Assembly: GCF_011386835.1 (NCBI RefSeq)
Contig: NC_088797.1
Coordinates: 34,286,001 to 34,350,000, forward strand
Reading direction: 5' to 3'
Source: Chrysemys picta bellii
Lineage: Eukaryota
DNA: 64,000 bases
Every line of letters begins with the position of its first letter. The stretch's first letter is position 1. The translations under genes and the position numbers were made by a program. Below the pieces are notes generated by a model. The model ran no database searches and was not told where the DNA came from. It saw nothing but the letters and a program-made list of their open reading frames with translations. Shown here in pieces: positions 18,848 through 63,946 of the stretch.

Positions 18848-20534
18848 ATGGTGAGAGGCAGTGGATGGGAGGAGTTTGTTGTGTGTATGTCAAATGGCTG
18901 CCTCATCTTGCCCCACCCCAGAGGCAGCTGCATCTCCCCGCTGGATGAGGGATCCCTGTGTAAATAGCCCCTGTGCCCCACCCCAGAAGGGGCTGCATCA
19001 TAGTTCTGGGCAAGGGATTCCTGTATAAACAGACGCCATACCTCATGCCAGAGCCAGCCACATCTCAGTGCTGAATGAGGGATCCTTGTGTAAACAGCTG
19101 CCATGCCCCCATCCCAGAGGCAACTGCATCTCAGTAGCAGAGGCAGCAGTCTCTGTATATATACTGCCTGCAGTGCATGTTGGGATCCCACCAGCAAAAT
19201 GTCAGATACTGTCATATTGAGCACTGTAGTCCCTTTCACCCCCTCATCTGTCTGTCTATCCTCCCCTTGCAGCAGCCCCCAGACGCAGGATCACACCTAG
19301 GCCTCATGCCTCATGAGCCAGGTCCAGCCTTGTTCTACCCGGCATGGCCAGCTCTCAGCATCCCTCCAGCCCCTTGGGCATCTGGAAATATTGTGGCACA
19401 AGAGCATAACTACTGCAGCTGGCCAGACGCTGAGGGCGTGCGAAGAGCCCCCAGCTCGGAGAGAGTGGGGCCGGCCTCAGTCAGAAGGAGACGGCAAACG
19501 CATCAGGGCCCAGGGTACAAAGCTAGTCAGGTGAGTTGGGGGGCAACAATGCTGGTACATCTGGATAACAATTGGGGGCCAGGGATCTGGGGGACTGGCT
19601 CAGAGCCACAGCCCAGGTCAGGACCCCCATGCAGATCAGTGATCCTTAGAGATCCTACAAGACCGAAAAAGGCATCTTATCTAACCCTACCAGGGGATCC
19701 CTGTATAAACAGTCCCTGAACACCACCCAAGAGGCACCTGCATCTCAGCATTGACGAGGGTTCCCTGTATGAAGAGCCCTTGTGCACCACCTCAGAGGTG
19801 ACTGCATCTCAGTGCCAGGTGAAGGATCCATGTACAAACAGCCTCCGCCCCTCACCAGAGGCATCTCCATCTCAGTGCTCCCCATGATTCCTTCCTGGTG
19901 GGATTAGTGAATTACTGGGTAAAAAGTGCTGAGACGCTCAGATGAAGGGGGGCCTCTAGAGGGTGCAGCATGGGCATTATTATATGGCTGACTTATGTGA
20001 GGTGGAGGGCCCCACACTCCCAGCCAGCAGGTCTTGTACAAGGCAGTGACAGGGGATTGCTGGCGGGGTGGGGAGAGCAGCTCTGAGTTCTAGTTTGGCC
20101 CCTCACTCTAGCTCTGCCCTTTCTCACAGGGACCCTGGGCCTCTATGCCCCCCGGACCCACAACAGCCAGCGTCTTCTGCAGCCACCAGCCCCTCAGGGT
20201 GAGGAGGAGGGCAAAGGCCCAGGCTGTTCAGCCACTCCAGATCCATGGCCTATCCCGGGGCCAGTATCAGCAGCTGTTCCGCTCACTGGTGGAACGGGAG
20301 CTGGATCCAACAGAGACCCCAGGCCATGGGCTAGAATGGGGCCGCAGGATCAAAGAGCAGCTGTTCTACGCTGTGGGCTGCCCCCGCTACCGGCAGCTGG
20401 TGGGCCCCGACGGGCATGTCCGGGTAGTGGAGTATGCGCACCGCACTGGGCACAGGCAGGCCCCACCCCACTATGACATCGACACTGGGGATGAGGAGTC
20501 ACCTGGCACCGAGGAGGCACCAGGCCCACCCTAA
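18848..20534 (+). CDS. Uncharacterised C22orf31-like (DUF4662-like) protein, about 221 aa
   Basis: Model: ATG at 18848-18850 directly followed by GTGAGA (in-frame stop upstream at 18794), exon 19273-19530 (phase 0, ends CAG|GTGAGT) and exon 20130-20534. The C-terminal LQIHGLSRGQYQQLFRSLVERELD...GLEWGRRIKEQLF...CP resembles the remembered DUF4662 pattern IHG-x(4)-YxxxYxSVV...YSLELGxxIKxxL. An alternative ATG lies at 19306. Confidence 0.7.
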
Positions 20535-20733
20535 GAGGCCAATCCTGCAGAGCCCAGCTGGGCCCAGCCACACGCAGGCAAACCTCTGTCAATTACACTG
20601 TGAACGTGGCAGCGTGTGATCTATGTCCTGTCTGTTGTGAAGGGACCGAGGTGGAGCTGAGTCTGGGTCAAGCCAGGTAATTGTTCCCAGCCCTGGGTTT
20701 CTTGATTGCCCTCCCAGGCATGGACCCCATGGG

Positions 20734-62300: not shown

Positions 62301-63946
62301 CCCAGAGGGGAAGGAGGTGTTTCTGGGGGGCAGGTTGGGGACTCCTGGGGGGAAGGGTTATTCCTGGGGCAGAGGGGAGGGTGGTTCACAGCTGGGGGAC
62401 ATCACTGGGGCCCTCACTCACCTTCAGCTGTTGCAGCTCGGCCTCTGTGTTGATGGTGAGAGCCGGGTACATGGCCTTGTACTGCTGGGCTAGCACCCTG
62501 AACCTGAGAGAGAGAGAGATGGGGACCAGTGATCCCACAAGGGCACCCCTAAACACCGCTGCACTGCCCGGGGTCACAGACGCCCAAGCTCTACACTGTC
62601 ACGTGGGGTGTGATGTGGAACAGATTCCATGGGCAGGGCATCCTGAGAAGGCCCCAGGGCTGGGGGGCATGAATGGATCCCCGCGGGCCCCTGGGCATCT
62701 TTGTGAAAGGATTCCTCCCCTCCTTTCCCTCCCCCTCAACTCACTTCTTGGAGAACTCATGGAAGTCGGCCAGCAGGTCACAGATGCGCAGGCCGGTGCG
62801 GGAAGCCTTGCAGGCATAGACGGGGCCGATGCCCTTCTTGGTGGTGCCCAGGCTGCCAGGGGAGCAGAGTCAAAGCTGGGTGGTGGTGGGAACTCCTCCT
62901 ACCCGCCAAGCTGCAGCCAGACTGGATGCTCCCCACACTGGCCCAGGCTGCAGGGAGATGAGCTGCCCTGTCACCAGAGGATGGGAATCCCACAGAAACA
63001 ACCTCCCCTCCCCTCAACCCCAGCCCAGCCCTGCCATTGGGGATCAAGGGGAACCCCTAAGAAAATGCCCTGCTCCAGGGGACCCAGCTATAATCCTCCC
63101 CAGGCCCAGGTCCAGGTCCAGGCCCAGCTCCATCCCTCCTGCCCCTCCCAAATGGGGACCCAGCTGTTAAGCCCCTCACTTCTTGCCATCCTGCTGCTGC
63201 CGCTGCTGCTCCTGGATCCTATCCACGGCCTGGTGGAAATCGAACACTGTGGCAAGAGAGAATGGGAGAGGAGGTGAGAGGGGAGGGACACTCCTACCCT
63301 CTGCTACCACTGCCTCCACCAGCCCCCTCCCCATCTTCTGACACAGCCCACTCAACTCCCCTCCCCGCCCCTCCGCTGTTCAGCTGCCTGGTCATCCTCT
63401 TCCAGTGAGCCCAGTGCCCCCAGGGTCTTGATAGGAGAAGGAGGACAGCGCCCCCTGCTGGCTGCTCTGGACTTACCAATGTGAGCTCTATCTGAGATCA
63501 CCGTGCGGGACTCCCAGCCCTCCAGACCTGCGGGGAAGGAAAACACATCACTGTGGGAAGGTCACCCATGGGATCCCCCAGAGCCTAGCCTACCCTACAT
63601 GCCAGGCCTGAGCCTCCCATCCCCATGCAGGGGGCCGGTGACAGCCCTGCTATAAAGAGTGGGAACTGGGATTTATTTACTGTGCCTTTATGTAACTGGG
63701 GGAAAGAATATAACCCAGGAGTCCTGACTCCCACCCCTGCTCTAACTCACTAGACCCCCACTGCCCTCCCAGAGTTGGGCAGCGAACCCAGGAGTCCTGC
63801 CCCTCCGTTCCCCTCCCAACCACTAGATCCTCTCTCTGAGGGAGGGAGCAGCAGGGTGGCTGGGGTCGGTCACTCACCAGGCCCTTTCTTAAGGTTCTTC
63901 TCAGCTTCTTCAAAGAGTCCTGGCAGATGGATGACCACTCCGTTTC
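59359..63946 (-). CDS. Adenylosuccinate synthetase paralog (ADSS-like), 5'-partial
   Basis: Exons 63946-63878, 63527-63477, 63246-63180, 62852-62745, 62503-62422, 62090-61964, 61184-61030, 60801-60677, 60427-60330, 59942-59793 and 59411-59359, with no stops or phase breaks. Motifs [41 protein letters not shown] and TKLD are intact. Paralog identity is not resolved, so no symbol is given. Confidence 0.95.
59582..59634 (-). other. Duplicated, diverged copy of the ADSS-like terminal exon
   Basis: Acceptor CCCACAG|TG AAG TGG. It encodes [18 protein letters not shown] (no stop) versus [17 protein letters not shown] in the distal copy. Confidence 0.85.

Follow-up and report, generated by a model that had tools for sequence, protein, structure and literature searches.

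Probable retention of old paralogs, lost in mammals, at the painted-turtle counterpart of human 11q12.3

The stretch of DNA dealt with here, the window, comprises 64,000 nucleotides of Chrysemys picta bellii, the painted turtle (contig NC_088797.1 of RefSeq assembly GCF_011386835.1, positions 34,286,001 to 34,350,000; CM062324.1 of assembly GCA_011386835.2, near 34.3 Mb), with no N among its letters. Its gene order, assembled from a six-frame translation, Pfam scans and NCBI gene tables, is LBHD1(-), UBXN1(-), DUF4662-like(+), ZnT1-like(+), SELENOW-like(-), LRRN4CL(-), BSCL2(-), GNG3(+) and ADSS-like(-) (Table 1). The order and orientation of the genes shared with human agree with what we take to be the human 11q12.3 map, from which the other four, DUF4662-like, ZnT1-like, SELENOW-like and ADSS-like, are presumably absent. 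A first-pass annotation had described these four as interleaved with the conserved 11q12.3 genes, in a block that begins with the DUF4662-like gene and ends inside the ADSS-like gene; this is borne out, all four lying where it had placed them. The reading preferred here, to which we give a probability of roughly 0.7, is that the window corresponds, in the painted turtle, to human 11q12.3 and keeps old paralogs that mammals have lost.

The same annotation went further in proposing that at least three of the extra genes are ohnologs from whole-genome duplication (WGD), kept in turtles and lost in mammals. That proposal holds in graded form. The case for descent from the two rounds of vertebrate genome duplication (2R) is strong for ADSS-like and moderate for ZnT1-like, a likely instance; SELENOW-like may or may not have arisen in this way. 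None of the three is a recent turtle-specific duplicate, each being at least as old as the split of turtles and lizards, and we infer that the extra genes were lost in mammals. That mammals have lost ancient paralogs is well known, and a block of this type is, as such, unsurprising; adssl and SLC30A1-like genes are already annotated and SELENOW2 has been glimpsed in Lepidosauria. The locus offers one verified case by which to gauge the extent of mammalian losses from the ancestral vertebrate gene set.

Table 1. Features of the window, the extra genes first (positions counted from the first letter of the window; TM, transmembrane helix; Sec, selenocysteine; ORF, open reading frame; UTR, untranslated region; SECIS, selenocysteine insertion sequence)
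Feature	Position	Strand	Evidence
ADSS-like (adssl)	59359-64000	-	11 exons within window; PF00709 matches up to 1.5e-22
ZnT1-like	24974-26633	+	two exons; Cation_efflux 3.5e-12
ZnT1-like exon 1, TM 1-4	24974-25569	+	Cation_efflux 3.5e-12; RNA joint 25569>25904
ZnT1-like exon 2, TM 5-6, C-terminal domain and stop	25904-26633	+	weak ZT_dimer match
SELENOW-like	27139-29790	-	six exons from spliced RNA contigs
SELENOW-like exon 1, ATG at 29676	29639-29790	-	RNA joint 28861>29639; contigs reach ~29790
SELENOW-like 25-nt micro-exon, Sec codon, C-G-S-U-G-Y-R-S-R	28837-28861	-	RNA joints, four runs
SELENOW-like coding exon 3, 54 nt	28376-28429	-	RNA joints 28064>28376 and 28429>28837; sometimes skipped
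SELENOW-like coding exon 4	27987-28064	-	RNA joints; tblastn finds counterpart in gecko and Elgaria
SELENOW-like coding exon 5, NGDGYVD...VLEQ, stop 27490-27492	27475-27567	-	RNA joints; Emydura 95% identical
SELENOW-like last exon, 3'UTR with AATAAA and sole SECIS candidate	27139-27260	-	RNA joint 27260>27475; Emydura 89% identical
DUF4662-like, first exon from 18848, last-exon ORF to 20531, then stop	18848-20534	+	sub-threshold PF15578 match
LBHD1-like exon	2-538	-	Pfam Lbh (PF15317) at 8.7e-17; outside the block of extra genes
UBXN1 (UBX, coiled-coil and UBA exons)	11799-16519	-	UBX 1.3e-19, weak UBA_7; NCBI 332-aa UBA/UBX product
LRRN4CL, single coding exon	35396-36256	-	fn3 3.2e-11; ORF equals NCBI 286-aa product exactly
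BSCL2/seipin	42074-46749	-	Seipin Pfam matches 1.7e-14 and 1.2e-8; NCBI 405-aa Seipin product
GNG3, two coding exons (57124-57225, 57557-57682)	57124-57682	+	translations

The adenylosuccinate synthetase-like gene

The ADSS-like gene corresponds to the database gene adssl and matches, exon by exon, the NCBI protein 'adenylosuccinate synthetase isozyme 2-like isoform X2' of Chrysemys picta bellii (P0199), with the N-terminal 99 codons falling past the end of the window. Four of its exons give PF00709 matches (6e-9 to 1.5e-22) that are collinear over profile positions 186-402. The motifs GTTKKGIGP and TTGRKRR are inside the window; the exon for the GDEGKGK P-loop is outside it and is represented in P0199. 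On the whole, adssl looks like a functional enzyme gene.

For relatives, a search with one 51-aa exon against a representative library gave matches that were mostly fragments or chimeric models and served solely to obtain full-length identifiers, and a second search, with a small profile from three adssl-type rows, supplied the 120 best matches that were used. These fall into two groups, one of proteins named 'adenylosuccinate synthase, like' or 'isozyme 2-like' and the other of canonical ADSS2. The adssl clade is supported at 99 by FastTree (123 rows) and at 100/99 by IQ-TREE (46 rows), and comprises great white shark, stingray, devil ray, lungfish, Polypterus, sturgeon, bowfin and teleosts together with, among tetrapods, newt, two caecilians, kiwi, turtles, lizards and snakes. 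Branching within it agrees with the species tree and all ADSS2 rows, from sharks to mammals, are outside it. The clade contains no mammal, though lower-scoring mammalian ADSS2 rows were among the matches retrieved. Canonical ADSS2 is also present in turtles: the 90% cluster of a gecko ADSS2 includes proteins of Pelodiscus, Pangshura and Caretta, encoded on contigs other than that of the adssl block. Judged by these trees, adssl is neither a turtle-specific duplicate nor the ortholog of a human gene, the two outcomes that would have gone against the first-pass annotation.

Position is also pertinent. The genes called in bowfin are, in order, one for a protein with SAP, SPRY and AAA_33 domains (HNRNPUL type), adssl, a 75-aa G-gamma gene with which exon 1 of turtle GNG3 has 88% identity, and a gene with exons matching turtle seipin. 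The bowfin order HNRNPUL-adssl-GNG3-BSCL2 thus mirrors the turtle order BSCL2-GNG3-ADSS-like. In great white shark adssl adjoins a gene of the TMEM179/179B family, and block paralogy is therefore partly seen, adssl being found beside an HNRNPUL gene, GNG3 and a TMEM179-family gene. In human, TMEM179B is presumably in 11q12.3, TMEM179 beside ADSS1 at 14q32.33 and ADSS2 near HNRNPU at 1q44. Linked paralog pairs, here from the ADSS, TMEM179 and HNRNPU families, are the expected leftover of a block or genome duplication. The reading of adssl as a 2R ohnolog lost in mammals is well supported. It is a third adenylosuccinate synthetase, which separated from ADSS2 before the divergence of sharks and bony vertebrates, a duplication of that age being clearly evident for ADSS, and in the bony-vertebrate ancestor it was already located between GNG3 and an HNRNPUL gene.

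Two considerations weigh on the other side. The ADSS tree is without cyclostome or invertebrate rows and dates the duplication only as preceding the gnathostome crown, and the loss in mammals is deduced from missing matches together with general knowledge and not from a search of mammalian genomes.

In its relation to known systems, the turtle gene forms one clade (100/99) with adssl of zebrafish and other fish and with the NCBI 'isozyme 2-like' proteins of reptiles, amphibians and sharks. It shares with fish adssl the 13-exon type of enzyme gene, intact motifs for inosine monophosphate (IMP) and guanosine triphosphate (GTP), and its bowfin neighbours; there is no essential difference, apart from a degenerate tandem copy of the last exon in turtle. 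The symbol adssl appears in a zebrafish paper, as the first adenine-specific purine enzyme (PMC3706446), and no paper was found in the literature that describes adssl as a third ancient paralog lost in mammals. Non-mammalian vertebrates have three adenylosuccinate synthetases and not two, which matters when purine metabolism in fish, frog or reptile is read via mammalian gene lists.

Some details of individual gene models deserve mention. The degenerate tandem copy of the last coding exon (59352-59428) is at 59575-59651, 223 bp upstream in the last intron, and is 84% identical; the copy at 59362-59418 is the one in the annotated protein. The exon at 62744-62854, which encodes GTTKKGIGP, part of the IMP-binding site, is missing from isoform X2 of the turtle (P0199, 426 aa) and is included in the X1 form of Chelonia (462 aa). 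The UniProt adssl model of Pelodiscus, K7G070, has many substitutions and intron read-through, with an end branch of 0.73, and reflects either a poor old assembly or a copy in decay in Pelodiscus.

The DUF4662-like and SELENOW-like genes

At the other end of the block, the DUF4662-like feature is an ORF conserved in turtles, of uncertain family, and we would not count it in the ohnolog argument. The match to PF15578 scores 24.5 bits (Chrysemys) and 20.4 bits (Emydura), both below the cut-off of 27, and spans only profile positions 193-257 of 269, i.e. about 60. That the feature does not belong to that family and is perhaps non-coding, a chance match in GC-rich and repeat-bearing intergenic DNA, is a serious contender, falling somewhat short of even odds. 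Besides the score, it is favored by the lack of a DUF4662-like entry in the Chrysemys gene table read, by a 65-bp tandem repeat at 18909-19135 that overlaps the 5' part and whose unit is not a multiple of three, by flanking non-coding DNA being about equally conserved between Chrysemys and Emydura, and by the failure to detect a counterpart at two lizard loci or to obtain any result for DUF4662 from the protein Atlas and a literature search. Set against this are the recurrence of the same weak match in Emydura, the last-exon ORF that is open in both turtle suborders with a ratio of nonsynonymous to synonymous substitution rates (dN/dS) of 0.37, and an NCBI model for a 228-aa product in Emydura.

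The SELENOW-like gene is a different matter. It is absent from the gene tables read for Chrysemys and Emydura at the locus and it is expressed, with RNA contigs from four runs and three organisms that are 95-100% alike and reach a depth of up to about 1000 in one run. Their joints define a spliced frame of 90 codons, MAASCLPVRIIF-CGSU-GYRSR..., ending ...KVLEQ, in which the Cys codon of CGSU is split by intron 1 and the in-frame TGA is inside the 25-nt micro-exon. Splice forms with and without the 54-nt exon 3 are found (the skipping joint is 28064>28837), and skipping keeps the frame. The exon stretches that align are 87-98% identical in the side-necked turtle Emydura, versus about 72% over the gene region 27376-29603, which is mostly intron; the micro-exon, taken together with some 13 flanking nt at either end, is 98% identical, with no change in the 25 nt of the exon, TGA included. 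The dN/dS is 0.07-0.19. In gecko and in the lizard Elgaria exons of the gene are located beyond the 3' end of ZnT1-like, in reverse orientation, and among those of Elgaria is a matching Sec exon of 25 nt that reads GS-U-GYKSR. SELENOW-like and ZnT1-like are accordingly arranged tail to tail in both turtles and lizards.

Some observations on the transcripts and the intron are more peripheral. In organism A one low-depth contig skips exon 5 (joint 27260>27986), which would alter the C-terminus. Intron 1 contains a GC-rich minisatellite at 29039-29603 with units of 29, 59 and 88 bp and about 18 copies, where the contig of one related turtle carries an additional 29-nt unit and its joints are rearranged. 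The Sec micro-exon of Elgaria (locus L006, ~16881) begins with A versus T in turtles, and the Cys codon would read TGA if exon 1, of which no trace was detected in Elgaria, ends in TG as it does in turtles. A candidate for exon 1 at 28612-28558 ('MAGGVSFSKE-UGA', of SxxU type) was discarded, there being no in-frame splice for it and the RNA contigs contradicting it.

By its motifs, by which only it is placed, the product would be a selenoprotein of the SelW/Rdx type. In common with the SELENOW2 of Lepidosauria and mammalian SELENOW1 it is of the short Rdx type, with CxxU-GY, FPxxLEI, GxFE and NGDGYVD, and is expressed; its CxxU is at residues 13-16, as against 10-13. Other results are less clear. 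Single exons, in short exon-by-exon queries, give no Pfam match, and exon 5, again a short query, aligns weakly (E 1.2) with mouse selenoprotein W (PDB 2NPB). A SECIS search of Rfam yielded no match at gathering score or with E up to 10. The last exon does hold one ATGA..AAA..GA candidate, for which the minimum-energy fold is without a SECIS shape and which is not preserved by compensating changes in Emydura.

The origin of the gene is where interpretations diverge. One survey locates SELENOW1 close to EHD2 and, in fishes and amphibians, SELENOW2 close to TRPM7; it places invertebrate sequences inside the SELENOW2 branch and dates the split of SELENOW1 and SELENOW2 as pre-vertebrate (PMC13134290). 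SELENOW2 is considered lost in amniotes (Mariotti et al. 2012 and the 2026 selenoproteome survey, PMC13134290). However, supplement 13 of the tuatara genome paper lists two genes, SELENOW1 and SELENOW2, for tuatara as well as other Lepidosauria, a SECIS having been found for SELENOW1 only. Given that report, the lizard SELENOW-like gene is most simply the 'SELENOW2' of the tuatara supplement, and the turtle gene may be the same; a SECIS that is hard to find is a property that it shares with what is reported for tuatara SELENOW2. If so, and if the split was pre-vertebrate, the gene is not a 2R ohnolog of SELENOW. That it is an amniote survivor of the pre-vertebrate SELENOW2, relocated, and lost in mammals without being a WGD ohnolog of the 19q13 SELENOW, has an appreciable chance of being correct, with the odds leaning the other way. 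The lizard loci that bear the gene, the lack of an Rfam SECIS match in the turtle copy, alongside a tuatara SELENOW2 for which no SECIS could be found, and the invertebrate sequences of the SELENOW2 branch are all in keeping with it. Pulling in the opposite direction are the survey's placing of SELENOW2 beside TRPM7 and its loss in amniotes (PMC13134290), whereas SELENOW-like is between ZnT1-like and LRRN4CL, and the weakness of trees of 90-residue proteins is also relevant. EHD1 (11q13), EHD2 (19q13, beside SELENOW) and EHD4 (15q15, the arm of TRPM7) are ohnologs, and three SELENOW-type ohnologs would fit that pattern too. Whichever applies, the turtle expresses a selenoprotein unlisted in the gene tables read, at a time when the latest selenoproteome survey counts SELENOW2 as lost in amniotes (PMC13134290).

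The ZnT1-like gene and the tail-to-tail pair

The two exons of the ZnT1-like gene sum to 1326 nt, or 441 codons and a stop, and exon 2 has 100% identity to the NCBI 'proton-coupled zinc antiporter SLC30A1-like' of Chrysemys picta bellii (P0001, 441 aa). The gene is expressed, its intron (25570-25903, GT..AG) being skipped by spliced RNA contigs from three organisms with a contig depth of about 9. The Cation_efflux (PF01545) match scores 46.9 bits versus a cut-off of 26.6. With SLC30A1/ZnT1 it has in common the Cation_efflux fold, the two exons, C-terminal HELHVWQL and GIHAATVQPEF, and a PDZ-ligand-like motif at the C-terminus. This end, ...EYETTV in turtle (26610-26633) and gecko (locus L001, ~12295-12312), resembles a conserved class I PDZ-ligand motif. 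ZnT1 likewise terminates in a PDZ-ligand-type motif.

The metal site is another story. In the alignment, the ligand site of TM2 is FHMLSD in canonical ZnT1, FHTLSG in the shark '1-like' protein, FHTLAG in squamates and LQTLGM in turtles, and that of TM5 is LHVLGD in canonical ZnT1 versus LALCLRL in turtle, with both ligands gone. The turtle protein is thus without the His and Asp of TM2 and TM5 that make up the tetrahedral transmembrane zinc site, whereas the squamate and shark copies retain the TM2 His only. Again unlike SLC30A1/ZnT1, the turtle translation is without a His-rich loop, and the gene belongs to a separate clade with a long stem. Since all four transmembrane zinc ligands are replaced in turtle, zinc transport of the ZnT1 type is probably absent and zinc binding in the manner of ZnT1 very unlikely, and the gene, a member of the ZnT family by descent, is probably not a ZnT1-type zinc transporter. 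The dN/dS between Chrysemys and Emydura is 0.37-0.52, values at which the coding sequence is still under purifying selection. A ligand-free relative of ZnT1 offers a natural means of probing the function of the remaining ZnT1 scaffold.

Two word searches yielded 14 turtle entries from both suborders (74-95% identity) and about 25 from squamates (~45-53%), and none from birds, crocodilians, amphibians, teleosts or mammals. In Emydura and Elgaria, too, the gene next to ZnT1-like on its upstream side is UBXN1. In trees the sauropsid ZnT1-like clade has support of 100/100 and a stem of about 1.2 changes per site. It joins the 'SLC30A1-like' proteins of two sharks with support of 88/77, and the group so formed is sister to canonical ZnT1, whose clade includes shark, Polypterus, teleosts, frog and lizards. 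Constraining the sauropsid ZnT1-like and sauropsid SLC30A1 proteins to group together costs 28.7 log-likelihood units, and the p value of 0.0008 in the approximately unbiased (AU) test rejects a reptile-specific duplication. The change of Met to Thr in TM2 and the loss of Asp, both shared, speak for a single ancestor of the shark and reptile genes, and the turtle protein is about 40% identical to shark '1-like' versus 33-35% to canonical ZnT1.

On this evidence ZnT1-like would be an old and fast-evolving relative of SLC30A1 common to turtles and squamates and probably to sharks; it is at least as old as sauropsids and probably as old as jawed vertebrates, a duplication before the split of sharks and bony vertebrates being moderately indicated. 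Ohnology with SLC30A1 through WGD is plausible and fits the known 1q/11q paralogy. Support for the shark link is moderate. The shark ZnT1-like gene adjoins an H3.3-like histone gene, and no gene of 11q12.3 is found within 10 kb of it.

That different shark neighbourhood is one of several points that speak against an ancient origin. The stem branch is very long, several rows are skewed in composition, and the ZnT tree is without SLC30A10. Hagfish and annelid rows are inside the canonical ZnT1 clade, a sign of rooting or long-branch trouble. The 'zinc transporter 1-like' of Polypterus, a candidate fish ortholog, was ruled out, being inside canonical ZnT1 and beside CCDC127 and SDHA. The stem, the composition, the shark neighbourhood, the Polypterus result and the lack of matches in birds, crocodilians, amphibians, teleosts and mammals would all suit a local duplication of DNA in the reptile stem followed by fast divergence, for ZnT1-like and perhaps for SELENOW-like, with the shark link a long-branch artefact; given the AU rejection of a clade with sauropsid SLC30A1, the derived FHTL[SA]G of TM2 and the missing second Asp ligand that shark and squamate copies have in common, and the higher identity of the turtle protein to shark '1-like', we regard this as improbable.

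A bolder proposal may be considered, one that at present is speculative and seems rather doubtful. Two ancient genes not yet described might survive in the reptile 11q12.3 block as a pair whose tail-to-tail arrangement is conserved. The first would be a SELENOW-type selenoprotein ohnolog, the third of vertebrates, distinct from both SELENOW1 and the SELENOW2 linked to TRPM7 and overlooked by the 2026 survey; the second, the ligand-free ZnT1 relative, would have been conserved from sharks to reptiles in a role other than zinc export.

With regard to chromosomes, in the geckos Paroedura, Heteronotia and Sphaerodactylus ZnT1-like and ADSS2 are on contigs identical in length (196-286 Mb), apparently one very large chromosome. 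In other squamates ZnT1-like is on contigs of 10-23 Mb, and the pattern fits a microchromosome fusion in geckos.

Neighbouring genes and minor observations

Of the conserved neighbours in Table 1, the 3' end of BSCL2 is taken from the NCBI model, and its 5' exons are beyond 46.7 kb. For catshark, sevengill shark and devil ray the neighbours within 10 kb of the loci are uninformative. A coding score based on GC at third codon positions (GC3) failed to tell exons from GC-rich non-coding frames, for which a residue-composition filter was better. Degraded debris resembling reverse transcriptase is found at 22.3-24.4 kb, between DUF4662-like and ZnT1-like. Upstream of the seipin exons, in DNA of low GC, a long interspersed nuclear element (LINE) at 47954-50395 (-) has two neighbouring long ORFs with reverse-transcriptase and endonuclease domains.

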